From Diplonema japonicum (Eukaryota > Protista > Euglenozoa: Diplonemea), in the NCBI GenBank assembly GCA_964019335.1, contig OZ025704.1:450622-514621 (forward strand): a DNA stretch of 64,000 nt, written 5' to 3'. The notes beneath the pieces were generated by a model. The model made no database searches. It worked only from the letters and a program-made list of their open reading frames with translations, and was not told where the DNA came from. Both the position numbers and the translations under genes were made by a program. The stretch's first letter is position 1, and each line of letters starts with the position of its first letter. Below, one piece after another: positions 5,050-64,000 of this stretch.

Positions 5050-6248
5050 ATGGGGGGCACGTCGACGGCGGTAAAGGACATCGCGATCATCAATGGGGCG
5101 CTGAGCGCATGCGGGGGGTTGGCCGTCATACTGTCGTCGGTAATGATACCGCAACTGAGGAAACAGCTCTCCCGGGGAAGAATGCTGCTTCTGATGCTGA
5201 GCTTCTGCGACATGTGCCAAGGGATCCAGTTCATGCTGACAGGATCGTACAGCACAGAAACAGGAAGCGCATCGTGCGTCATCTTCGGGAGCCTCGGCAT
5301 CATCGCATCGGTGTCGTCCTTCATTGCGACGGCATGGGTGAGCTGGTGGGTGCACCATACTATTAAACACCCAGAGCTTCCCACGCCTATCCTCATGCCT
5401 TTCATCACCACCATCAGCTACCCTTTAGTCACCTTGACAGGTCTCTTCATCTATGCTGCTGTGCACTGGCACGGAGACGGCATTGGTTGGCGGCAGGTGT
5501 TCGAAGAGACGCAAGACTTCCCTTGGTGCTTCATCGCAGACCATCCTACCACAGATATGTTTATCTGGCGGATCATTGTGGAGTACATCCCCCTCATCGC
5601 GTCCATGATCGTGACCGCCATCTACTACATCACCTCTATTAGGCACATTAAGAAACAAGCCGCGCTGCAGTGCATTCGGGAGTCCCCCGAGATTATCGCT
5701 CTGGAGAGGAAGTTCCTGATCATCATTGTGGCGTACATCATCATCAGGCTGCCGGGGGTCATCGCGAGGCTTTACAACATGGGGTCGTCTTCGGACCATG
5801 TTGCGGGCTTTCTGCAGATCATGACTGTGCTTGGTGACCCTTCTCAAGGGCTTGTCAATGGTGTCGTCTTCACTCTGGGGACAAGGGTGGTTCGTGACAA
5901 GCTGTTCTCCATATGCTTCTATACTTCTAAAAATTCTGAAGAACCCGACACGCCGCAGGGCGGCCCGCTGAACCACAGGGGTGGGGAGATAAACGAGCAG
6001 CCTGCACGGTCCCCTAGGGAGAGACCTAAATCGCTTGTTCTCACCGGGCAAAACAAGGTTCTAGGTATGTTGTATGTTAACACAGTTCACCATCTCCAGT
6101 GCAACCTATTTCTGATCGCCTGTCCCCGTCTCTCGCAGAGAGCGCCCCCCTCCTCAGCACCTCTGTCAAAAGGGAACCCACTCCTGCCAATCTCTCACAT
6201 ACCTTTGCAGAGAGCGCTCCTTTGCTGGGCCAATCGGGAAAGAAGTGA
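5050..6248 (+). CDS. Seven-TM receptor of the cAMP-receptor (CAR/GCR1-like) family; intron 6065-6099
   Basis: Seven hydrophobic segments, LLLMLSFCD, C in the TM3 loop, FPWCFI, YIIIRLPG, DPSQGLVNGVVF. A 35-nt intron gives a C-tail with repeated ESAPLL ending at TGA 6246-6248. Confidence 0.75.
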
Positions 6249-7450: not shown

Positions 7451-8486
7451 ATGGCACAAGTCATGTTCAAGAGAGTGTGCCTAGGGGCAGGAGCCTACTC
7501 GCTATGGTCGGGTTTTGGTGCAGTTGTGTATGAAATAAAGCTCCCCCCCTTTTTTTTTTTACAAAAGAAAAAAAAACCCCCCTCCCACAGGTCACAGTAT
7601 CAAGAAGAAGAGCGTGTGGGGATAAAACGTATAAAACTGTTAAAAGAGATCAACGACCTAAAGGCAACAATCGAAGAGGAAGGGGAAACAGGACGACGCC
7701 TTATCGAGGGCCTGCACGAGGAATTGGAGTGCATCGGGGAGATGAACGAAGGCGTGCACAACCTATGGAAGGAGCGTGCGAGGCGGTGGAGCGACGTCAA
7801 GGAGTTCGACGACATGATGAACGTGATGCCATGGGTGTTCTGGCACTGGAAGCGGTTGGAGAAGTGGTACGAGGTAGTAGCAAGCCGTCTCGAGAATCAC
7901 GAAGACTTCAAGCAATACGAGTACACCAGCATGCATCTCAACGACATGCGCATGGCACACGTTCTTGACGCCTACGACACAGAGGTGAAGCTCCCACAGA
8001 CGGCCTCTACCATCGGCCTCGCTAGGCAAGCTTCCAACAACGACCCTTTCTTGTTTGTTCTTGAAGCGTCTCTCAAAAACACCAGCCGCCCTTCCCTCCA
8101 AGACTTCAGCGTGCAGAAGCAAACCCTTGCATCCATCATCGCGGCACTTCCTGCCACCGACACCTTCAAGCCACTCTACGCAGAAGCGTCCTCAGCTATC
8201 GCACGACACCCCATGGCAGAGTACACAGTTGAGGAGTTGGGCAGCAAGCTCAACATGGTTGGTGAGGTGTTGCAGCATGCTGAAAGGGAAGCCACTTCAG
8301 AGGACCTCCAGCGGGCCATCAAGCTGACCGACGAGCTCAAGGCTGGCATCATCGACTACCGAATATTAATTCAGGTATTTTTTTTTTCCTCTCAAGATTT
8401 AGAAAAATATAAACCCATTGCAGGCACACAATCTGTACGAGGCGTACATGACTACCCTGCTGCTGTCCTTGTCGCCTGCAAAGTAG
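7451..8486 (+). CDS. Probable mitochondrial coiled-coil protein, possibly with a cryptic mitofilin domain (Mic60/Mic34-like); introns 7528-7590 and 8375-8423
   Basis: N-terminal hydrophobic segment, then coiled coil. Spliced C-terminus IIDYRILIQAHNLYEAYMTTLL resembles the mitofilin C-terminal helix. Gene model is solid, family call is tentative. Confidence 0.45.
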
Positions 8487-8597
8487 GGCCTTTTTATTTT
8501 GATAGTTTTCTTTTTCTTTTTTCGGGTGCTTCGTTATCCCCTCTTTTTTATTTATTTATTATTGACCTATGCTTCTTTTTTTTTCTTCTTGTTTTTT

Positions 8598-8840
8598 CGA
8601 TCCATCGGGAGGACAAAGGCGGTGGAACAGGAGGGCGATATTTGCATCACCGAGGACCAAGCATGACCTAGAGGCGTTGAAAGGACAATGGACAAGAGAA
8701 CGAAGAGAAAGAGCGGCCAGGCTGGGAGAAGGCCGGCAAGACCACCAAAGGAGGAGAAACCGCTGCTGAAAGGGGATAGGTGCAGGTAGAAGATGAGAAC
8801 AAGGGGGCGTCTCACAAAGACTTCCTTTAACTCATATATA
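8598..8840 (+). mobile_element. 5'-truncated non-LTR retrotransposon 3' end (longest of three copies)
   Basis: Ends in GAGAACAAGGGGGCGTCTCACAAAGACTTCCTTTAACTCATATATA, shared with 10855 and 50564. Purine-rich residual frame GQRRWNRRAIF resembles the L1/Tx1 ORF2 C-terminal WxxRNxxIF motif. Confidence 0.6.
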
Positions 8841-9043
8841 TCTTCTTTCTTTGCGCAGTTCAAGCGCGTAAAAAAAAGAGAAAAAAATGTTTCCGAGCTG
8901 AACAGAGGAATCACCTTCTCAAAACTAAGAATTACGATACTTCTTCTTTTTTTTTTTTGTTTCTGTTTTTTGTTTCGTGCTCCTTCTCACCGACAACACC
9001 ACAGGAGCCAAGATATGCAGACGCGCGAAGGGAATAGATACGA

Positions 9044-10510
9044 ATGAGCCCCTTGCACCATGTTTCAGTCAAGAGACGGTTGCTGCTGCTGAGCATCAGT
9101 TTGATCATCACGATCGTGTACTTGTTCATCTGCGGTGGTGTGATGATGATGTTGGAGAAGTCGAACGAAGAAGACATCATCGAAGAGCTTGCAGAGGAGA
9201 TAGCGAAGGTGAGTCTGAGCAACAGCACCATATCGCATCTTGAGGAGCTTGGGGTGTGCCACTTCCCTCGCGACGCGCAGTGGACGTTCTCTGGGTCTGT
9301 GTTCTACGTGCTGACAGTGATCACAACGATAGGCTACGGCTCGCACACCCCGAGAACCTTCAACGGGAAGTCCTTTACTGTAGTCTTCGCCATCTTCGGC
9401 ATTGCGCTCATAGGCAACATCCTAACAAACTGCGCTGTTCTCCTAGTGGGCATCATCCAAGGCATCCTGCAACGCGTACGCAAGAAAGAAGTCGAAAAGC
9501 GCAAGCGATCGTCCCACGAAGAACAGCAAGTGTGGGACGCAGCTTTCAGCGCCTTCGAGTCACGATTTCATGAGAACGGCTGCCTGCCGAGCGAGTCCCT
9601 GAAGGACGTGATGGAGCTTGCGACGAACTCCCCTCTGGATGAGGACCAAGAGGAGTTCTTACTGTCAAACGTCGACAGCTTGAACTCTGGGTACGTTACA
9701 AGAGGCGGCGTTGCGAGGGCCCTCGTTTTGTGGTACGAGACTCAGGACCAGCTCCCCGAAGGCGTGTCGCGTCTGAAGTTCTTCATCTACATCATGGTGG
9801 CCTTTGTGTGGATCATCACATGGGCATGCGGCTTCTCGTACGTCGAGAGCTGGGAGATCCGGGACGGGATGTGGTTCTGCTTCGTGACGATGACGACGAT
9901 CGGGTTCGGGGACTTCGTGCCCACATCCAACACAGGGCGCATCATGTCGTTTGTCTTCGTGGTGCCCGGGCTGGGGATAGGGGCCACCGCCTTGTCGTCG
10001 CTGTGGAAAGCATTCGACTTCTCAAGGTTCTGGTGGCTGCAGAAGGCGTACACTAAGGGGAAGGTCTCGAAGAAACTATTGGAGGTGCATGGGATCCTGC
10101 TGCCGATTAGCACCAAAAACAAAGTCCGGAAGGTAAAGAAAAAGTACAGGACGAGGCTTCGTGACTACGTCGCCGACAGCAGCGAGGAGGGAACACCTGT
10201 CAACATACGGAAGAACGGAGAGGCGGAGGAGGGCAACAGCCTTGACACTGGCACAGGTGAAAGTTCACCCCTCAATGGGTTTGGCGTCAATGGGCTCTCG
10301 CATCCGTTGTTAGCTAGCTTGACGACAGTGATCCCAGACAGCCCTATATCCCCTAGCCACTCCCACCCGGAGGCTATACCCTACTCGAAAGATTCTCTCA
10401 TGCTCTCAACGCCTGCCCTGCAGCCCAGCTCATTGCTTCCAGCACTGCCTGTTAGGAGTATTGCCGGTTCGATGCCTGCTCGCACCCAGCAGCAGCAAGT
10501 GTTTCTTTAG
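9044..10510 (+). CDS. Two-pore-domain (K2P/TPK-like) potassium channel
   Basis: Two pore loops, TVITTIGYG and TMTTIGFGDF, each flanked by TM helices. Confidence 0.92.
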   Translation: MSPLHHVSVKRRLLLLSISLIITIVYLFICGGVMMMLEKSNEEDIIEELAEEIAKVSLSNSTISHLEELGVCHFPRDAQWTFSGSVFYVLTVITTIGYGSHTPRTFNGKSFTVVFAIFGIALIGNILTNCAVLLVGIIQGILQRVRKKEVEKRKRSSHEEQQVWDAAFSAFESRFHENGCLPSESLKDVMELATNSPLDEDQEEFLLSNVDSLNSGYVTRGGVARALVLWYETQDQLPEGVSRLKFFIYIMVAFVWIITWACGFSYVESWEIRDGMWFCFVTMTTIGFGDFVPTSNTGRIMSFVFVVPGLGIGATALSSLWKAFDFSRFWWLQKAYTKGKVSKKLLEVHGILLPISTKNKVRKVKKKYRTRLRDYVADSSEEGTPVNIRKNGEAEEGNSLDTGTGESSPLNGFGVNGLSHPLLASLTTVIPDSPISPSHSHPEAIPYSKDSLMLSTPALQPSSLLPALPVRSIAGSMPARTQQQQVFL

Positions 10511-57314: not shown

Positions 57315-57965
57315 TTTAACTACCTCTCAATTATACTCGCTGTCATCAACCCCCTCCATCTGAAGGGGGATGGGGTTTTTCTTTTTTTTTTTTAAAAAGG
57401 GGGACTTGAGAAAATAAATAAAAAGGGGGACTTGAGAATGTTTTTTTTTTTTTTTTTTTTTTTTTTTTTCAAAAGACACACAAGGCACGATAAACCTTAA
57501 GAGAAAATAAAAATATTCCAAAACAGACAATCAAGTTCCAACCTGGGAGGAAGGCATGGGTTTCTCTTTTTCTTTATGGGAGGGAGAGGGGAAGAAGAAG
57601 AAGCAACTCCAAATGATAAAAATTCAAAAATAAAAATCTCAAAAAAGGCTTAAAAGAAGAAGAGGCAAATTCAAAAACATACTAGGGAGGAATGAGTGGG
57701 GCAGGGGGTAAAATTTAGGAGGGGGAAAGAGGGAGAATCAAAAAAGGGGAAAGGGGCAGAGTGACCAATGTCCATGCGAAAAAGCATAGAGCATTTGGAC
57801 CGGCTTTGGACACGCTGGTTTGTTCACAGTAACATCGGTGGTCGACCCGTGCGTATGGTCTACGCGTGAGCGCTTTCAACCCCAATAAAGAAGCCTAATC
57901 ACAGGGCACCATTACCACCGTTCATAGAGTGCAGGTCTTGACGTCATTATTTTTGATAGTTTTGC

Positions 57966-58662: not shown

Positions 58663-58701
58663 AACCAACGATTCTAAAGCTACAGTTTCTGTACTTTATT
58701 G
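58663..58701 (+). ncRNA. SL: Complete 39-nt spliced-leader (mini-exon) sequence, not followed by the SL intron
   Basis: AACCAACGATTCTAAAGCTACAGTTTCTGTACTTTATTG has the length and conserved 3' half (ACAGTTTCTGTACTwTATTG) of kinetoplastid/diplonemid SLs, with a diplonemid-type AACCAACG start. It is followed by GATCC, not GT. Confidence 0.92.
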
Positions 58702-58750
58702 GATCCCCTCCCCCCCAACACACACTATAAAACAAAAAAAAAAAAAAAAA

Positions 58751-60457
58751 ATGGATCCAAGACGACTCGCAGGAGGAGGTGACCGCAGCCGCAGCCGCAG
58801 CCCGCAGGAGCAAGCCCGCAGCCCACAGCACACGGCGCCGAGACCCACCCAACCAGGCAATCTGGTTGGGCAGTATGAATCCCCACCCCCTAGATCCCCC
58901 CACCCCCCTTTAGAAAAAAAAAATAATAAAATAAAAAAATCACTAGCAGAGACCGCGGTTTTGACCGCCGCTGCTACAGCCACGGCCGCCCCAGCCGCCC
59001 TGAACGCCACAGCCGACCCTGCCGCCCTGATCGCCGCAACTGAGACCACCGCAGCCGCCCCTGCCACAGCCACGACCGCCGCGACCACGACCCCTGCAGC
59101 CGACCCTGCTATTGTTGAAGAGGGAAGAAAAGAGGGAGAAAAAAAGGGGTGGGTACTGGTGTATGGTGAACACCCTCCCGGGTTGAGGACGGGCCCGGCC
59201 CCTGCCTTCCCGAAAGCCCTGCTTTCAGGAAAGTGGGAGGCCCTGTCTGGGAACTCAGGGAGGGAGACCCTCCAATACGGGTACCGGTGGGAGGGGACGA
59301 ACGCCAAGGTGCGCCCCACCACGGGGATCCCAGGGGGGGCGGAGGGGTGGGTGAGGGAGGTGGCCGCCGCCGCAGGGCTCGAGGTGGTCCCCAACCAGGT
59401 ACTTGTCAACAAGTACAAGTCTGGTTGTGGGATTGCCGCCCACAAGGACGACGCGAGGCTGGGACCGATTGTCCTAGTCCTCTCGTACAGAGCCGAGACC
59501 ACAATGGTCATGAGGAGGGGGGACAGGGTGGCGAAATACCTGGTGCCCCCCTTCTCATGGGCATTGTTGGAAGGTGAAGCGAGACACCAGTGGACGCACC
59601 ACATCCCGTCCGGGATGTCCACTGGTGTCAGGGTGTCGATCACCCTGCGTGCGGTAGGCCCCAAGCTCACCCGCACACCCCAGGAAGACCCATCCCCTGG
59701 GTTAACAGACGAACCCCCTTTTTTAGATCCCCTTTTTTGTGGGCAAGGGGGGGTGGCACTCCCAAGAGAGGATAGTGCCCCACCCGCCCCCTTTTTTTTT
59801 TTAGAACCCTCTTCGGAGGAAAACAGACCCTCTTCGGAGGAAAATAGAGAGAAAGGGGAAGAGGTGGCACTCCCGAGAGAGGGTGGTGCTCCTCCCCCCC
59901 ATTTGTCCCCCCCTTTTTCGTTTTTAGAGCCCTCTCCAGAGGAACCCTCCACGGAGGTAAAAAACAGACCCTCTTCGGAGGAAAACAGAGAGAGAGGGGA
60001 AGAGGTGGCACTCCCGAGAGAGGGTAGTGTTCCTCCCCCCCATTCGTCCCCCCCTTTTTCTTTTATAGAGCCCTCTCCAGAGGGACCCTCCACGGAGGTG
60101 AAAAACAGACCCTCTTCGGAGGAAAAAAAGGCAGAGGGAGAGACAGCACACCCGAGAGAAGGTAGTGCCCCTCCCTCTCTGCCCCCCATTTTTTCTGGAC
60201 CCTCTACGGAGGTGTACACCCTGGTCCCCAAGGGCCGGGGGCTTTTTTTGAGGGTGGAAGGGAAAGAAAAAAAAAAAAACAAACAAGGAGGAACCTTTTT
60301 TCTTTTCAAACAACCAGGGGGACCCAGCACCCACCCCCACCGCCCGCCAAGGTGTGGTTGGGGCGGAGGCTGCGAGCGACGTGAGAGCACCACTGCACAC
60401 CCTTGTGAGAAGACAGAAAAGAGCCCCCTGGATTGCCATGGGTGGCAGGGAACCTAA
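58751..60457 (+). CDS. Retroelement ORF1: A/T/P-rich linker + AlkB-type 2OG-Fe(II) dioxygenase + tandem repeats
   Basis: RETLQYGYRW, NQVLVNKY, GIAAHKD (HxD at 59441), GEARHQWTHHI (distal His), RVSITLR (2OG-binding RxSxxxR). Confidence 0.85.
   Translation: MDPRRLAGGGDRSRSRSPQEQARSPQHTAPRPTQPGNLVGQYESPPPRSPHPPLEKKNNKIKKSLAETAVLTAAATATAAPAALNATADPAALIAATETTAAAPATATTAATTTPAADPAIVEEGRKEGEKKGWVLVYGEHPPGLRTGPAPAFPKALLSGKWEALSGNSGRETLQYGYRWEGTNAKVRPTTGIPGGAEGWVREVAAAAGLEVVPNQVLVNKYKSGCGIAAHKDDARLGPIVLVLSYRAETTMVMRRGDRVAKYLVPPFSWALLEGEARHQWTHHIPSGMSTGVRVSITLRAVGPKLTRTPQEDPSPGLTDEPPFLDPLFCGQGGVALPREDSAPPAPFFFLEPSSEENRPSSEENREKGEEVALPREGGAPPPHLSPPFSFLEPSPEEPSTEVKNRPSSEENRERGEEVALPREGSVPPPHSSPPFSFIEPSPEGPSTEVKNRPSSEEKKAEGETAHPREGSAPPSLPPIFSGPSTEVYTLVPKGRGLFLRVEGKEKKKNKQGGTFFLFKQPGGPSTHPHRPPRCGWGGGCERRESTTAHPCEKTEKSPLDCHGWQGT
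59752..60211 (+). repeat. About 3.5 imperfect tandem units of 111-141 nt within ORF1
   Basis: GTGGCACTCCCGAGAGAGGG...ACAGACCCTCTTCGGAGGAAAA recurs near 59752, 59864, 60004 and 60141. Confidence 0.85.
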
Positions 60458-63400
60458 GCCAGCGCCCAAGCGGAAGAAGAACAGGAGGAGGCACAGGAGC
60501 GAAACGGCCCTTCAGAGGCGTCGGGAGAAGAGGACCAAGGCGAGGGAGGGGGCGAGGGAGGCTGCCAGACAGGAGAAGAAAAGGCACCGTCGTGCGAGGA
60601 AAGAAGGGAGGAGGAGGGCCCGCAGAGAGGAACACGAGGCCGCCCTGGAACAGAAGCCAGATGACCCTGCAATGGGGCTGAAGCGGACCGAGGTGGGAAC
60701 GCCTGGAGCCCAACCCCTGGCACCCAGAATCCCGGCACCTGGGGCTGCAACCGGCACAAGGAGGCACCGCAGACGGACGGGACACAGCAAGGAAGGGGTG
60801 AGATGGGAGCACCTGGGGGCGTGGGCCTGGGTCGCCCTGGTCTCCCTCTTGCTGATCCCAGGGGTGAGGCAGGTGCTGGGGGCGGGCATCGGGATGGCCC
60901 CCTCCTTCCTGCATGCGGCAGTGTTGTGGAAGAGGCCGGGGAGCGACAGGAGGACCACCCGCAGGTCAAGGGTACAGGTGGGGCCCCGAGGGGATGAATG
61001 GTCCGCCGGGGAGCTCGCTTGGCTAGCAGTAGGGGGCACTCTGGTGGGAAGCACTTCAGTTTGGATAGGGGGGCTGATGTCGCTCTGGGCCATGTCGGAA
61101 GTGATGGTGGGGAAAGCTGGTGCTGACCCGACCCAGAGATTCGGACCGGTAAAGCTGAGGAAGACAAGACGCGGATCGAGAGGTCACTACCTGCCGGTGT
61201 ACTTGGGCCCGCCTAGAAGCTCAAGACGCAGAAAAAAGAAGGAGGACGCCAAGCAAGCGGCGAAGGAACGAGCTGAGACGGAGGATAAGCTCTTTCAGGC
61301 CGAACACCTGGACCCCTTTGCGGACTTGACGCTGGCAGGGGACGCGTTGCAAGGAGGTGGTGACACTCCCCCCATGGATTTGGATGATGAGCACACGGAG
61401 GCGCAGAAGGAGGGGGAAAAAGAAGGAACAGACAAACATCAATGCCGGATGGAAGGCTGCTCTTTCCGCACCAGTGTGGCAAGCTGTCTAGTTAAACACC
61501 TCAATGCGGTCCACCATCATTTTGTGAAACAAGAGCAGGCGAGGAACATGAAGGTGAACCTCTGTGGAACGTGTGCTGCGGCGTGCTCGTCGAACCAGAC
61601 GCACTGTGCACTACACAGGCAGCGGAATCTGTGGAACCCCGACAAACAACCCAGGGCCGGCAAGTCAGTGGACGAGATCATGAAGAGCTTCAAGCTGACG
61701 AGGAGATCGACGGAGAAGGACGGGAACTGCATGTTCCACGCCCTGGCCGGTTCGCTCGGGGAAGCCTACGGGGACCACACCCACATCAGGAGCGAGGTTG
61801 TAGAATGGATGAAACACCGGGAGGAGCACTATGCCCCGTTTTGCAGCGAGGGTTGGGACCGGTACTTGGAAGGGATGGGCACAGCGGCGACGTGGGGAGA
61901 CCACTTGTGCCTGGCAGCCGCAGCACAAGCGTTTGGCCGCACGATACTCGTGGTTGCTGGGGGGAACAACCCAGTCCTGATGATAGGGGAGTACAACTCC
62001 GACCACGAGAAGGTGGTGGTGCTGGCGTACAACGGCAACCACTACGAGTATGCAGTCGGAGAGGAGGAGTCGATGATGATGCTCCTTGATGAGTCCCAAT
62101 CGGTTGCTCTACAAAAGGCAGGTAAGCAACCCTCCGAGGCCCCGGGTGAGGACATCGGGGAGTGGGACATAATAGACCGTGCGATCCCTGGATACGGGAA
62201 GGCAGAGGTGTTGGACCAGATGGGGGCAAGGAACCAGCAATTCCTGTACTGTCCGGTGGCGAACTGCGCTAGGTCGAAGTGCAAAAGCACGACCCCGTTC
62301 AACTCGACAAGGGTATGGAAGTGTCACCTGGATGGGCACCTGGAGAGTGATGAGATCCCGGAGAGCGTTCTGAGGAGACTGGACCTCGAGAGGTGCCTGG
62401 TGTGCAGGGGCTGTGTGTGGAAGGGTCAGGGGTGCCACGACGAGTGCAAAAAGGCGGTGCGAAGGGAAGGGGAATACACGACCCCCCCGCCGGCCCCGAC
62501 GAGGACCGAGTTACCCAGCCTGGAAGCCATAGCCGCCATGAACGTCACGACCATGGGGTCGATCCCGACGAGCCTTCAAAGACTGTGGGGGCTTACCCTT
62601 AAGCACACTCTGGGCCGGGCGGTGAAGGACAACACAGAGGAGGCTTGGCTGCTGGTGGCGATGCTCCCCAAAGCCTGCCTGTGGAAGAAGAGGGGAGGGA
62701 AGAAGCGGGACAAGGAGACGGAGCTGAGTGTCCAGGCCAGATTGGAGGAGTGGGAGAAGGGAAATTACATGGCCCTCTGGAATAAGCTGGAATCAGGTGA
62801 GAAGGGGGAACCTAAGAACGACGAGGTCTCTAAGGTCGCCAGGGCCACGGAACTGTGCAGCAAAGGGAGGTTCTCGGCAGGAAACGCGGCGCTTGTAGCC
62901 CAGGGGCTGGCGGAAGACAATGAGGATTGTTGGAGAGCGCTGCAGAGCAAACATCCAGAGCCACTACACCCCCAATGGGACAACCCGGCGAAGACGAAGG
63001 AAGCGGTAGAAGTCTTGCCGGAAGAAGTGCTGGACGCAATCAGGGACTTCCCGAGGGGGACTGCTGCGGGACCGACTGGTCTGAGAGCCCAGCACATCAA
63101 GGACGCGGTGGACGGAGCTTTTGAGTCTCAAGGCTGTTTGATGTCGGTGGCGAGGGCAGTCAACGCATTAGCTAGAGGCACGGCCCCTAGGGAGGTGGCT
63201 CCGCTGATGGCAGGGGCGAACCTTGTGGCCCTCAAGAAGAACGACAGGGACGTGCGGCCCATAGCCGTTGGGGATGTGCTGCGTCGGCTGGTGGGGAAAT
63301 CCCTTGTGAAGAAGATCGCTCCGGAAGTGGCCTCTTCGTACCTGAAGAAAGGCGGCCAGGTGGGGGTATCGGTCCCTGCTGGAATGGAGGCGGCTATACA

Positions 63401-63740
63401 CACCATCAGGCAGTATGTGGACAGGGAACGGGGCAACAAGCAGGAAAACAAGGTGATCCTCAAGATCGACTACGCCAACGCCTTCAACAGTGTTTGTCGG
63501 AGACAGCTGTGCTCACAGGCCTATGAGCAAGCGTCGGGGCTGTATGCGTGGGCCGGTTGGTGCTACAGGGTGCCCTCCCAATTATACTACAACGGAAAGG
63601 TGATTAAGTCCCAGGAAGGGGTGCAACAGGGGGACCCGATGGGACCGCTGCTGTTCTCTCTGGCCATCCAACCCCTGGTGAACAAGATAAGTGAAGACTG
63701 CAACCTGGACATCCTCCAGTTCTACCTGGACGATGGCGTC
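60318..63740 (+). CDS. Retroelement ORF2 (not in the ORF track): basic region, TM-like helices, C2H2 finger, OTU protease, Cys/His fingers, reverse transcriptase
   Basis: Manual translation shows the frame open from TGA 60249-60251 to the window end, first ATG 60438. CRMEGC..HLNAVH; DGNCMFHAL..WGDHL..NGNHY (Cys 61728, His 62040); CPVANC..HLDGH; RT at about 63000-63740. Confidence 0.88.
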
Positions 63741-63785
63741 GCACTTCATGCTCCTGGGGGCGCCGATAGGATCGCCGGAGTACCA

Positions 63786-64000
63786 CAAACCTGCAAACCC
63801 GCAAACCCGCAAACCCGCAAACCCGCAAACCCGCAAACCCGCAAACCCGCAAACCCGCAAACCCGCAAACCCGCAAACCCGCAAACCCGCAAACCCGCAA
63901 ACCCGCAAACCCGCAAACCCGCAAACCCGCAAACCCGCAAACCCGCAAACCCGCAAACCCGCAAACCCGCAAACCCGCAAACCCGCAAACCCGCAAACCC
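63786..64000 (+). repeat. Perfect octamer array (CAAACCCG)n, i.e. (TTTGCGGG)n on the - strand; telomere-like or satellite
   Basis: One CAAACCTG unit, then 25 perfect units plus a partial unit to the window end. Confidence 0.95.

Follow-up and report, generated by a model that had tools for sequence, protein, structure and literature searches.

At one end of a Diplonema japonicum contig (OZ025704.1), a spliced-leader (SL) exon is followed by an AlkB-family dioxygenase, an OTU cysteine protease and a reverse transcriptase (RT), which raises the question of whether a retrotransposon owns these two accessory enzymes or whether host genes lie beside an RT fragment by chance. The window analysed here is a stretch of 64,000 nucleotides, and its positions 58663-63785 had been called a single SL-associated retrotransposon in a preliminary description. 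We found that this segment is a dead, cut-off terminal copy of a genuine high-copy retrotransposon family. It is probable that the family is a recently active non-LTR retrotransposon of D. japonicum, and we hold the explanation as a whole, including what it says on chromosome ends and enzyme roles, to be probable to the same degree.

The copy in the window

Pfam matches place all three domains where the preliminary description had put them. The 2OG-FeII_Oxy_2 model (PF13532) matches residues 167-300 of ORF1 (E 4.7e-12, 47 bits against a cut-off of 31.2), the OTU model (PF02338) matches residues 428-533 of ORF2 (E 1.8e-12, 48.3 bits against 23.3), and RVT_1 matches residues 933-1101 of ORF2 (E 4.1e-12; 2.1e-16 in a full copy). 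The catalytic residues are intact as claimed, with the AlkB motifs and the OTU Cys and His all present in the window copy, and pattern matches bear out the C2H2 finger and, as two knuckles, the further Cys/His fingers (Table 1). The TM-like helices suggested earlier come down to one segment (ORF2 residues 125-153, nt 60810-60896); no other segment passes the threshold, a Kyte-Doolittle mean of 1.6 over 19 residues.

Table 1. Features of the element copy and the adjoining terminal array, in window coordinates.
Feature	Positions	Strand	Remarks
Spliced-leader exon, 39 nt, diplonemid-type	58663-58701	+	5' terminus of the retro-copied RNA
5'UTR	58702-58750	+	Abuts the SL directly ('spliced' form); 121-nt GT...AG stretch missing here
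ORF1	58751-60457	+	568 aa; in most copies the N-terminal portion of a fused polyprotein
AlkB-family 2OG/Fe(II) dioxygenase domain	59138-59710	+	Pfam match 59249-59650; HKD 59441-59449, WTHH 59591-59602, RVSITLR 59630-59650
141-bp tandem repeat, 2.5 copies	59820-60175	+	TRF; encodes a Pro/Glu/Ser-rich linker
A13 homopolymer	60267-60279	+	Surplus A divides the polyprotein frame into ORF1 and ORF2
ORF2 of the window copy	60438-63785	+	From ATG 60438; basic region, hydrophobic segment, fingers, OTU, partial RT; truncated
Hydrophobic, weakly TM-like segment(s)	60810-60929	+	Kyte-Doolittle 19-aa window, maximum 1.75
C2H2 zinc finger (C-X4-C-X12-H-X4-H)	61443-61517	+	Pattern match; aligns with D. papillatum P0273
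Cys/His knuckle	61563-61616	+	Pattern match
OTU cysteine protease domain	61719-62048	+	Catalytic Cys in DGNC 61719-61730; His in NGNHYE 62031-62048
Cys/His knuckle upstream of RT	62394-62447	+	Pattern match; conserved in D. papillatum P0273
Reverse transcriptase, N-terminal part to YLDD (63723-63734)	63234-63740	+	Pfam RVT_1
Post-YLDD remnant	63741-63785	+	Follows a 185-bp internal deletion; frame-shifted ...FMLLGAPIGSPEY; element cut off here
(CAAACCCG)n terminal array, 26.9 copies	63786-64000	+	TRF; reaches the contig end

Against PDB sequences, the AlkB domain matches ALKBH8 (E 2.4e-8), the OTU domain matches OTUD5 and OTUD3 (about 1e-4), and the best matches of the RT are R2 RTs (3e-7). 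The RT, for which 404 eukaryotic relatives were recovered at E <= 1e-5, is predicted to be of the non-LTR type. Word-based homologue searches gave no match with the AlkB domain alone or with the OTU/finger region, and relatives of the AlkB domain were recovered solely by exhaustive HMMER search.

The defects of the window copy became apparent from comparison with other loci and with Logan contigs of other sequencing runs, whose library type is unrecorded. Just after YLDD the window copy lacks 185 bp that other copies carry between query positions 5078 and 5081. Its ORF2 frame runs without a stop until the repeat begins at 63786, where the truncated element is capped directly, and the loose ends at the truncation run on into normal element in contigs of other runs. 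At 60267, the contigs are one base shorter than the window copy in all four runs. The homopolymer at this place is A12 in 17 loci, A13 in four and A10 in one, and the two-ORF layout, a minority state among family copies, is due to one extra A in the A12 run. AlkB had been thought to occupy an ORF of its own; in the family it mostly forms the N-terminal part of one frame of ~2,900 aa, as at the 17 A12 loci, two of which were read through directly and the others reported as long open frames. The copy number of the 141-bp linker repeat also differs from locus to locus.

The element family in two Diplonema species

The broken RT and separate ORFs of the window copy could be taken for a chance chimera, in which a host AlkB or OTU gene lies beside an RT fragment at one locus, and linkage of AlkB to RT at this locus only had been named beforehand as grounds for rejecting the retroelement. 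The D. japonicum genome (62.5 Mb), however, holds at least 85 AlkB-bearing copies linked to the element, and at least seven of them have one uninterrupted frame of 2,700-3,005 aa from AlkB to RT, the 3,005-aa frame belonging to a divergent subfamily. Where the sequence of the long frames was read (loci L012 and L016 and ORF2 of the copy C75), the order is AlkB, OTU, RT and restriction-like endonuclease. Together with the same order in a second species and the selection on AlkB described below, these counts refute the chimera, to which we give practically no chance.

Our reference for the element is one natural copy, C75, whose full ORF2 has 2,352 codons. The genome-wide search for full-length copies called for in the preliminary description did recover copies of 9.66 kb with REL endonuclease and poly(A). 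The element consists of the SL exon, an optional 121-nt GT...AG stretch, the 5'UTR, a single frame of ~2,900 aa, a 3'UTR of ~0.85 kb that ends in 26-bp repeats, and a poly(A) of ~46 (A46/A47 tails). From its N-terminus the frame encodes AlkB, the repeat linker, a basic/hydrophobic region, the C2H2 finger and OTU; these are followed by the Cys/His knuckles, RT, a CCHC and PD-(D/E)XK endonuclease and then ~650 aa. LTRs are absent, and many copies are 5'-truncated, at varying query positions from 39 to 2051.

The putative endonuclease in C75 ORF2 has the motif C-X4-C-X10-H-X3-C-X6-RHD-X19-E-X10-RPAD-X15-D, which is similar, with slightly different spacings, to the SLACS/CRE/MoTeR pattern in the available text of PMC12857005, and the region aligns with D. 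papillatum P0273. No Pfam model matches over the REL endonuclease region, an Atlas search with the RT-REL piece returned unnamed RVT_1 clusters only, and neither Pfam nor Atlas has a match for the C-terminal 473 aa or for the N-terminal basic region. Judged from these sequences, the family is a non-LTR retrotransposon bearing a restriction-like endonuclease (RLE/REL).

In D. papillatum, GenBank proteins auto-named 'SLACS 132 kDa' contain AlkB, OTU and RT in the identical order. Two of them, P0273 and P0274, carry all three on a single chain and are collinear with the element, with which they share 34% identity over 1,356 aa. The D. papillatum AlkB is 39% identical to that of the element and keeps the catalytic residues, the OTU Cys and His are likewise present, and a hydrophobic stretch of P0273 is weakly similar to the TM-like segment. 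Further AlkB matches (P0123, P0125, P0128 and cluster members) come from incomplete gene models or fragments tied to the retroelement family, and some of these bear the name ALKBH8-like tRNA methyltransferase. In the D. papillatum genome paper, 'a dozen' AlkB genes were counted and cited as a sign of dynamic gene regulation. Our comparison corrects the database annotation, in that the D. papillatum AlkB matches found here belong with the retroelement family. The linkage of the predicted AlkB, OTU and RT domains is a property of the family.

The AlkB domain has the HxD...H iron triad, the RxxxxxR 2OG-binding motif and a predicted jelly-roll fold, and HxD, the second His and RxSxTxR form invariant columns across a 44-sequence alignment. 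Between subfamilies its dS is 0.317 and dN 0.074 (omega 0.23; p = 1e-8, Fisher's exact test on Nei-Gojobori counts), and a frame-shifted dead copy, as internal control, gives an omega of ~1. Among young copies, 11 of 18 AlkB sequences are identical, so that dN/dS among them is uninformative. The substitution pattern indicates that purifying selection acts on AlkB, and the neutral evolution that had been set as a refutation was not seen. That AlkB and OTU are part of the retroelement's own coding sequence, as first proposed, is upheld by the many copies, the order shared with D. papillatum and the selection on AlkB.

The spliced leader and the chromosome ends

All diplonemid mRNAs bear a spliced leader, which in the related kinetoplastids carries heavy modification. 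The SL exon of the element is the sole SL in the window, where none is expected by chance. In 23 element copies SL nt 2-39 are kept and nt 1 is variable (changed in 14). Element copies start at SL nt 1-3, and what lies upstream of them is unique DNA, an older fragment of the element or a remnant of the array. We conclude that the SL belongs to the reverse-transcribed RNA, as its 5' end. SL-headed copies of unrelated sequences are also present in the genome.

Copies with and without the 121-nt stretch between SL and 5'UTR coexist at different loci. Cross-locus comparison gives the other 5' ends as SL + GTCGTTCG...CGAAAG + GATCCCC. As the 5' variants at L018 and L041 do not follow an AG acceptor, splicing is not the source of all 5' diversity. 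Rfam gave no match to an SL RNA family over the 5' module, and the 164-nt SL plus 121-nt stretch folds no better than shuffles (z +1.4), with an SL stem predicted across the GT. Genuine SL RNA genes with stem-forming introns lie dispersed at internal sites, and as their introns differ from the 121-nt stretch, we dropped the idea that the latter is a genuine SL RNA intron. Contigs of one run that behaves like RNA-seq span the element, and the depth of its SL bin is ~35,000, against ~40 elsewhere.

The preliminary description took the element as SL-associated in the sense of SLACS, CZAR and CRE, which target spliced-leader RNA genes. An element of that type would begin with an SL exon for this reason, and the SL exon at the 5' boundary, the 'SLACS 132 kDa protein' label of the D. 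papillatum relatives and the likeness of the REL motif to the SLACS/CRE pattern, as far as given in the available text of PMC12857005, fit such targeting. However, the copies start at SL nt 1-3 and not after nt 11, their upstream flanks are not SL gene repeats, and they sit at contig ends, whereas the SL genes are dispersed and internal with other introns; unrelated sequences can be SL-headed as well. Among the loci examined, no copy occupies a fixed place in the exon of an SL RNA gene, the trait of the CRE clade. SL-gene targeting is very improbable, and the association in that sense does not hold. As to the CRE clade itself, in which the preliminary description placed the element, the automatic 'SLACS' names of the D. 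papillatum relatives give no more than an indirect hint that the family may belong to it.

Copies of the element are found at nearly all contig ends, head to tail and with the sense strand outward, and at every end examined the element 3' end points toward the contig end. A few matches are internal, for example C115:74134 and C12:810964. Neighbouring copies are separated by (CAAACCCG)n remnants of 8-20 nt, and the (CAAACCCG)n array, of identical polarity at other contig ends, caps the ends. At four inspected ends the outermost copy is 3'-truncated, at a different site each time, and, like the copy in the window, borders directly on the array that caps it. We considered (CAAACCCG)n as the element's own 3' tail and dropped the idea, full-length copies finishing in poly(A). 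The C-rich strand of the terminal array runs 5'->3' toward the end, the reverse of canonical telomeres.

With nearly all ends occupied by head-to-tail copies in a single orientation, and eroded terminal copies re-capped, it is conceivable that the family has been co-opted to maintain chromosome ends, as in Drosophila, and is more than a mere parasite, with AlkB and OTU serving end protection. That no TTAGGG arrays were found in the genome would agree with this. On the other hand, a TERT-like RBD match is present (28.4 bits), the final sequence at the ends is a simple 8-mer array and not an element, and the polarity is the reverse of that expected from end-primed addition according to the available text of PMC12857005. 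Co-option for end maintenance is thus decidedly unlikely.

Possible enzyme roles and known systems

We propose that the RNA of this retrotransposon is polyadenylated and acquires its SL cap by trans-splicing or by using its own SL-exon/GT...AG module in cis. The endonuclease would nick the terminal array on its G-rich strand, with the orientation set by target-primed reverse transcription (TPRT); truncated copies could result from end erosion followed by re-capping. Since the array polarity is reversed, the chromosome-end part of this model stands on an unexplained structure, and at the C75 junction an array remnant precedes the A46 run, which is at odds with simple TPRT into the array.

The predicted AlkB structure (AF2, pLDDT 90.6) has ALKBH8 (2.9e-11) and ALKBH6 (5.3e-11), both RNA-side members, as its top PDB matches in Foldseek; ALKBH2/3, E. 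coli AlkB and the 6mA demethylase NMAD-1 follow at ~1e-9 to 1e-10, and viral matches comprise giant-virus oxygenases and RNA-virus polyproteins. By sequence and predicted fold, the nearest kin of the element AlkB are ALKBH8/ALKBH6 and small viral oxygenases. The enzyme might instead act on DNA, repairing or demethylating single-stranded cDNA or the target array (e.g. 1mA/3mC, 6mA) during integration, as the matches to ALKBH2/3, E. coli AlkB and NMAD-1 and the ssDNA exposed by TPRT would allow. We consider this unlikely, as ALKBH8 and ALKBH6 rank first in both the sequence and the fold comparison, the domain, at 18 bits where the cut-off is 267, does not qualify as an equivalog of bacterial AlkB, and the AlkB domains known in mobile RNA-based replicons work on RNA (PMC9289625).

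AlkB most likely would act in cis on the element RNA, removing methyl groups on bases or alkyl damage at which the RT stalls, and its targets may include cap-proximal SL modifications. The specific proposal that it erases RT-blocking methylation from bases of the SL-capped RNA, the hypermodified SL nucleotides next to the cap among them, so that the cDNA reaches nt 1, is rather unlikely. SL nt 1 is changed in 14 of 23 copies, and if the enzyme does clean cap-proximal bases, this often fails or has no bearing there. Several AlkB substrates are possible, as ALKBH8 and ALKBH6 are not classic m1A/m3C demethylases. The OTU domain could cleave the giant polyprotein, take off ubiquitin-like tags, or both.

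The accessory enzymes that retrotransposons have fixed show which host barriers matter to these elements. Selection has kept an AlkB in a non-LTR lineage present in two diplonemid species, which suggests that methylated bases in RNA or ssDNA hinder reverse transcription. If the cap-proximal proposal were true, non-LTR retrotransposition would for the first time be shown to depend on a dioxygenase, and the enzyme would provide a handle on diplonemid cap structure. As the family makes up most subterminal DNA and adjoins a non-canonical terminal repeat, it also bears on how diplonemid chromosome ends form. D. papillatum is a laboratory model, which makes the system testable.

In the literature searched, we found no description of AlkB and OTU ahead of RT in a retrotransposon polyprotein. 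An AlkB-OTU pair had been held to be characteristic of Betaflexiviridae, a view too narrow: AlkB folds of a similar kind are also present in polyproteins of Picornavirales-like viruses, in closteroviruses and in giant viruses, and a Ty3/Gypsy AlkB is known from an orchid. Betaflexiviridae, Closteroviridae and Picornavirales-like viruses share with the element an AlkB and a cysteine protease, in their case often OTU or papain-like, in one replication polyprotein of an RNA-templated replicon. The viruses, however, are RdRp-based, and there is no sign of direct descent: the fold match to RNA-virus AlkB has E 1e-9 to 1e-11 with a sequence identity of 13-24%, and giant-virus and cellular AlkBs match equally or better. 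NeSL/Utopia and Helentrons also have an accessory cysteine protease with intact catalytic residues, but the former's is of another family (Ulp1-like) and the latter, with an OTU protease, are rolling-circle transposons; the available portions of PMC4640811 and PMC4067079 do not mention AlkB.

Drosophila HeT-A/TART/TAHRE likewise form head-to-tail, one-orientation non-LTR arrays with truncated members at chromosome ends. Their poly(A) points toward the centromere and a simple-repeat cap is absent, whereas the diplonemid poly(A) points to the end and an 8-mer array caps it. MoTeR1, FoTeR and Cnl1 are fungal telomere-targeted RLE non-LTR retrotransposons grouped with SLACS/CRE/CZAR (PMC12857005). 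According to the available text of that source, they share with the diplonemid element an RT with a C-terminal CCHC/RHD/E/R(P)AD/D-type endonuclease, confinement to chromosome ends within terminal repeats, internal tandem repeats and a sense strand that runs collinear with the C-rich strand of the repeats. In the fungal elements it is the 5' end that faces the terminus, but in the diplonemid element, equally located in terminal repeats at chromosome ends, it is the 3' end. The same text does not mention AlkB or OTU in the fungal elements, and the diplonemid element differs further in its 5' SL, its length of ~9.7 kb and its protein of ~2,900 aa.

SLACS, CZAR, CRE1 and CRE2 resemble the element in their euglenozoan host, in Zn fingers, RT and REL endonuclease, and in the association with SL sequence. 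They insert at one fixed site within the exons of SL RNA genes, whereas the diplonemid element owns a whole SL, lies at chromosome ends and has the added AlkB and OTU modules. A retrotransposon lineage with a fixed AlkB-family RNA demethylase domain is found in Phalaenopsis, where the ALKBH5-like m6A demethylase of a Ty3/Gypsy element was proposed to counter epitranscriptomic control of its own RNA (PMC9289625). That plant LTR element carries its AlkB in an extra ORF; the diplonemid element is non-LTR, with an ALKBH8/6-like AlkB at the polyprotein N-terminus and an OTU in addition.

The window copy and the full-length element

That a single retroelement carries both AlkB and OTU, the central idea of the preliminary description, stands, and the finding is real and robust: the element is a non-LTR retrotransposon of the restriction-like endonuclease (RLE, or REL) type with an AlkB+OTU module, and it resides at chromosome ends. 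In the window copy, the Pfam matches to 2OG-FeII_Oxy_2 in ORF1 and to OTU and RVT_1 in ORF2 all (3/3) exceed the curated cut-offs, and both AlkB motifs (iron triad and 2OG), the catalytic Cys and His of OTU, and YLDD are present, so that the earlier reading of AlkB and OTU with intact motifs, together with an RT, is confirmed. The C2H2 finger and further Cys/His fingers were recovered as one finger and two knuckles. The weakest item observed is the 'TM helices', since only one hydrophobic segment has a transmembrane-like score. The spliced leader (SL) occurs once in the window, where none is expected by chance.

Features of the window copy and its surroundings
Feature	Position in window	Strand	Remark
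Piece of element 3'UTR	57376-57792		~400 bp long, upstream of the copy; 96-99% identical to part of the 3'UTR; inverted relative to all other ends
SL exon AACCAACGATTCTAAAGCTACAGTTTCTGTACTTTATTG, 39 nt	58663-58701	+	read directly in sequence
49-nt leader, GATCCCC...	between SL and ORF1 at 58751		directly after SL
ORF1, 568 aa	58751-60457	+	
A homopolymer	60267-60279		A13
ORF2 (second frame)	opens at ATG 60438		open until CAAACCCG repeat at 63786
Terminal (CAAACCCG)n array	63786-64000		reaches contig end

The window copy, at the right end of contig C57, is dead. It lacks 185 bp directly after YLDD that are present in all other copies, and it ends at 63785 within the RT, joined directly to the array. 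The outermost copies at the left end of the same contig (C57) and at contigs C42 and C75 are also cut at differing internal points and array-capped. The full-length copies with REL endonuclease and poly(A) that had been sought do exist in the family, as judged from an endonuclease block and A46-A47 tails, both of which the window copy is without. A natural copy located at the left end of contig C75 begins with the SL and reaches its poly(A) over a length of 9,657 bp; its ORF2 of 2,352 codons comprises, in order, a basic region with a hydrophobic segment, a C2H2 finger, OTU, Cys/His knuckles, RT and the endonuclease block, whose CCHC and RHD...E...RPAD...D match the pattern given for the restriction-like endonucleases of SLACS/CRE/MoTeR (PMC12857005). 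No recognisable domain was found in the last ~650 residues. Tandem repeats of 26 bp close the 3'UTR, ahead of a tail of A46-A47; these 26-bp repeats are also present at many contig ends.

The homopolymer is A12 in 17 loci, A13 in four (window included) and A10 in one, and one A fewer than in the window is also found in contigs from all four (4/4) public runs aligned to it. In the A12 state the AlkB frame continues straight into the OTU-RT frame. Frames of 2,700-3,005 aa that include the AlkB match occur on C9, C16, C24 (twice), C31, C33 and C97, and at two loci (L012, L016) the long frame is directly readable up to the limit of the locus sequence. The simple reading is that ORF1 and ORF2 are one polyprotein and that the window copy bears a frameshift mutation; slippage on the A-run is conceivable.

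Copies, subfamilies and the terminal array

We searched a genome of 62.5 Mb in 132 contigs; the published assembly of Diplonema japonicum YPF1604 has 62.30 Mb in 118 pseudomolecules (PacBio HiFi and Hi-C), and its data note is silent on transposons and telomeres. At the DNA level 91 stretches match the window element, 30 of them scored as loci with 97-100% identity. The Pfam AlkB search gave at least 85 element-linked matches and ~8 internal ones resembling host genes. The linkage of AlkB, OTU and RT is thus a property of the family and no local accident. Copies are truncated at different 5' points (query positions 39, 72, 109, 183, 419, 1125, 1338, 1850 and 2051), the signature of non-LTR retrotransposition. 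Plus-strand copies lie near contig ends and minus-strand copies no more than a few kb from contig starts, so every copy points outward.

Terminal (CAAACCCG)n arrays are also found at L031, L032 and L033 and at the ends of C1, C3, C4 and C5. Between successive element fragments, 8-20 nt of the repeat are present (L003, L004, L008, L015, L018, L046), and the complete 3' end at L004 reads ...A47-CCCGCAAACCCGCAAACCCG. The REL endonuclease would target this array by nicking its G-rich strand, from which target-primed reverse transcription would proceed; ends would erode and then be re-capped. At every contig end seen, the C/A-rich strand runs 5' to 3' toward the terminus, opposite to canonical telomere polarity, and at the C75 junction an array remnant precedes the A-run, an order that simple target-primed reverse transcription into the array would not give. 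There is no (TTAGGG)4 anywhere in the genome, which has a single TERT-like RBD match (C41:533974-534300).

A divergent subfamily is repeated in tandem every 10,659 bp (G000:C24:5,000-42,000); its AlkB scores 44.8 bits vs 55.9 in the main family, and two of its open frames are 3,005 aa. L011 and L012 differ from the window copy by 9-20% over query positions 1-1400 (5' module and ORF1 N-terminus), with an ORF2 in common that is ~98% identical, which points to probable recombination or template switching between lineages. At L046 (C9:8412-11449), the first 174 nt (SL, 121-nt stretch and 5'UTR start) are joined to the 3'UTR (reference positions 8425-9307), and this internal-deletion derivative may be a non-autonomous short form. 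In L008 (C58:506096-513754), C>T/G>A substitutions are numerous in both the 5' module and AlkB, frequently at CpG (18 differences in 573 nt vs 0-2 in most copies), and decay driven by cytosine methylation would fit.

The spliced leader at the 5' end

In 23 element 5' ends, SL nt 2-39 are kept and nt 1 is variable (A 9, C 9, G 3, T 2). Two main forms occur side by side in the genome, at different loci. In one, the SL is followed by a 121-nt GTCGTTCG...CGAAAG stretch and GATCCCC; in the other, found in the window, C57-left and C31, the SL abuts the leader precisely at G|GATCCCC. L015 shows a third form, with a different AG, and in a few variants the junction does not follow an AG. Upstream of the SL lies DNA that is unique, belongs to older 3'-truncated copies or consists of a few array repeats. 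The element RNA therefore acquires or carries the SL and is reverse-transcribed with it, and the earlier framing as an SL-targeting CRE element does not hold. The two forms would be explained by alternative acceptor use or by cis-splicing of the element's own SL-GT...AG module. The variable first nucleotide is compatible with miscopying of a modified nucleotide by the RT and does not imply that AlkB acts there.

SL followed by GT occurs ~200 times in the genome, with three intron classes (GTGTCCGACCGTGCCAATAAAGT, GTATCGACCGTGCCAATAAAGGA, GTCGCTCCCC...) scattered over internal sites, and introns GTGTCCGACCGTGCCAATAAAGT and GTATCGACCGTGCCAATAAAGGA are able to pair with the SL 3' end. SL exons with GTGTCCGACCGTGCCAATAAAGT, GTATCGACCGTGCCAATAAAGGA or GTCGCTCCCCGTGG... 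stand singly at, for example, C11:179617, C21:304999, C52:185483 and C57:137963. The dispersed classes look like genuine SL RNA genes; their introns differ from the 121-nt stretch. No large tandem SL array was found among the first 100 places listed. Other repeats are also headed by a complete SL (L036 and L039, C1:890258 and C3:59837; L037 and L042, C2:150559 and C4:650088), beginning SL+GTGGTGGGGATAACATGG... and SL+GTACCCAATCTGATCC..., which suggests widespread retro-copying of trans-spliced RNAs.

AlkB, its relatives and known systems

An exhaustive search of 1.84 billion representatives returned no close relative of the AlkB (best E-value 1e-15, identity <=46%), and most matches are single-domain proteins of ~180 aa. 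The longest that also bear OTU or RT are GenBank proteins of D. papillatum. AlkB, OTU and RVT_1 lie together on a single chain in P0273 (KAJ9442719.1, 2,635 aa) and in P0274. P0273 and the element are collinear over a region that starts at the C2H2 finger and finishes where the endonuclease ends (34% identity over 1,356 aa), and the AlkB of P0273 (39% identity) retains HxD, H and RxSxTxR. The architecture is therefore older than the divergence between the two species. GenBank already contains it, with automatically assigned names such as 'SLACS 132 kDa protein' and 'tRNA (carboxymethyluridine(34)-5-O)-methyltransferase'; in the paper on D. papillatum, mention is limited to RT models of SLACS-like type and 'a dozen AlkB-type genes', taken as host regulators. 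We found no account of the architecture among the papers searched that mention AlkB, OTU and retrotransposon.

Purifying selection on AlkB is seen between subfamilies. For the window AlkB and that of a divergent subfamily (L011), dS is 0.317, dN 0.074 and omega 0.23 (p = 1e-8 by Fisher's exact test applied to the counts); a frame-shifted copy has omega ~1, and young copies are too similar for informative dN/dS. The AF2 model (pLDDT 90.6) best matches ALKBH8 and ALKBH6, then NMAD-1, ALKBH2/5/3, Ofd2 and AlkB, in agreement with a PDB sequence search. Against a viral library, small oxygenases of giant viruses matched best, together with the AlkB modules found in polyproteins of Picornavirales-like viruses, flexiviruses and closteroviruses. 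Neither the viral-library nor the PDB comparison indicates a particular donor. Two near metagenomic relatives are fusions, P0175 with an mRNA cap guanine-N7 methyltransferase domain and P0232 with FtsJ 2'-O-methyltransferase and N6 methylase-like domains, which hints at a possible link of this subgroup to cap chemistry.

We argue that AlkB would act in cis on the template RNA, because its nearest relatives are RNA-side enzymes and by analogy with AlkB-bearing RNA viruses and an orchid Ty3/Gypsy retrotransposon lineage, whose AlkB has demonstrated m6A demethylase activity (PMC9289625). OTU would process the ~2,900-aa polyprotein and/or strip ubiquitin-like tags; accessory cysteine proteases are described as Ulp1 in NeSL/Utopia and OTU in Helentrons (PMC4640811, PMC4067079). 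Among fungi, RLE elements that target telomeres have been described, and the sense strand of MoTeR/FoTeR is collinear with the C-rich strand (PMC12857005), as it is in the Diplonema element. SLACS, CZAR and CRE are located inside SL genes, whereas the Diplonema element has the SL as the 5' end of its RNA.
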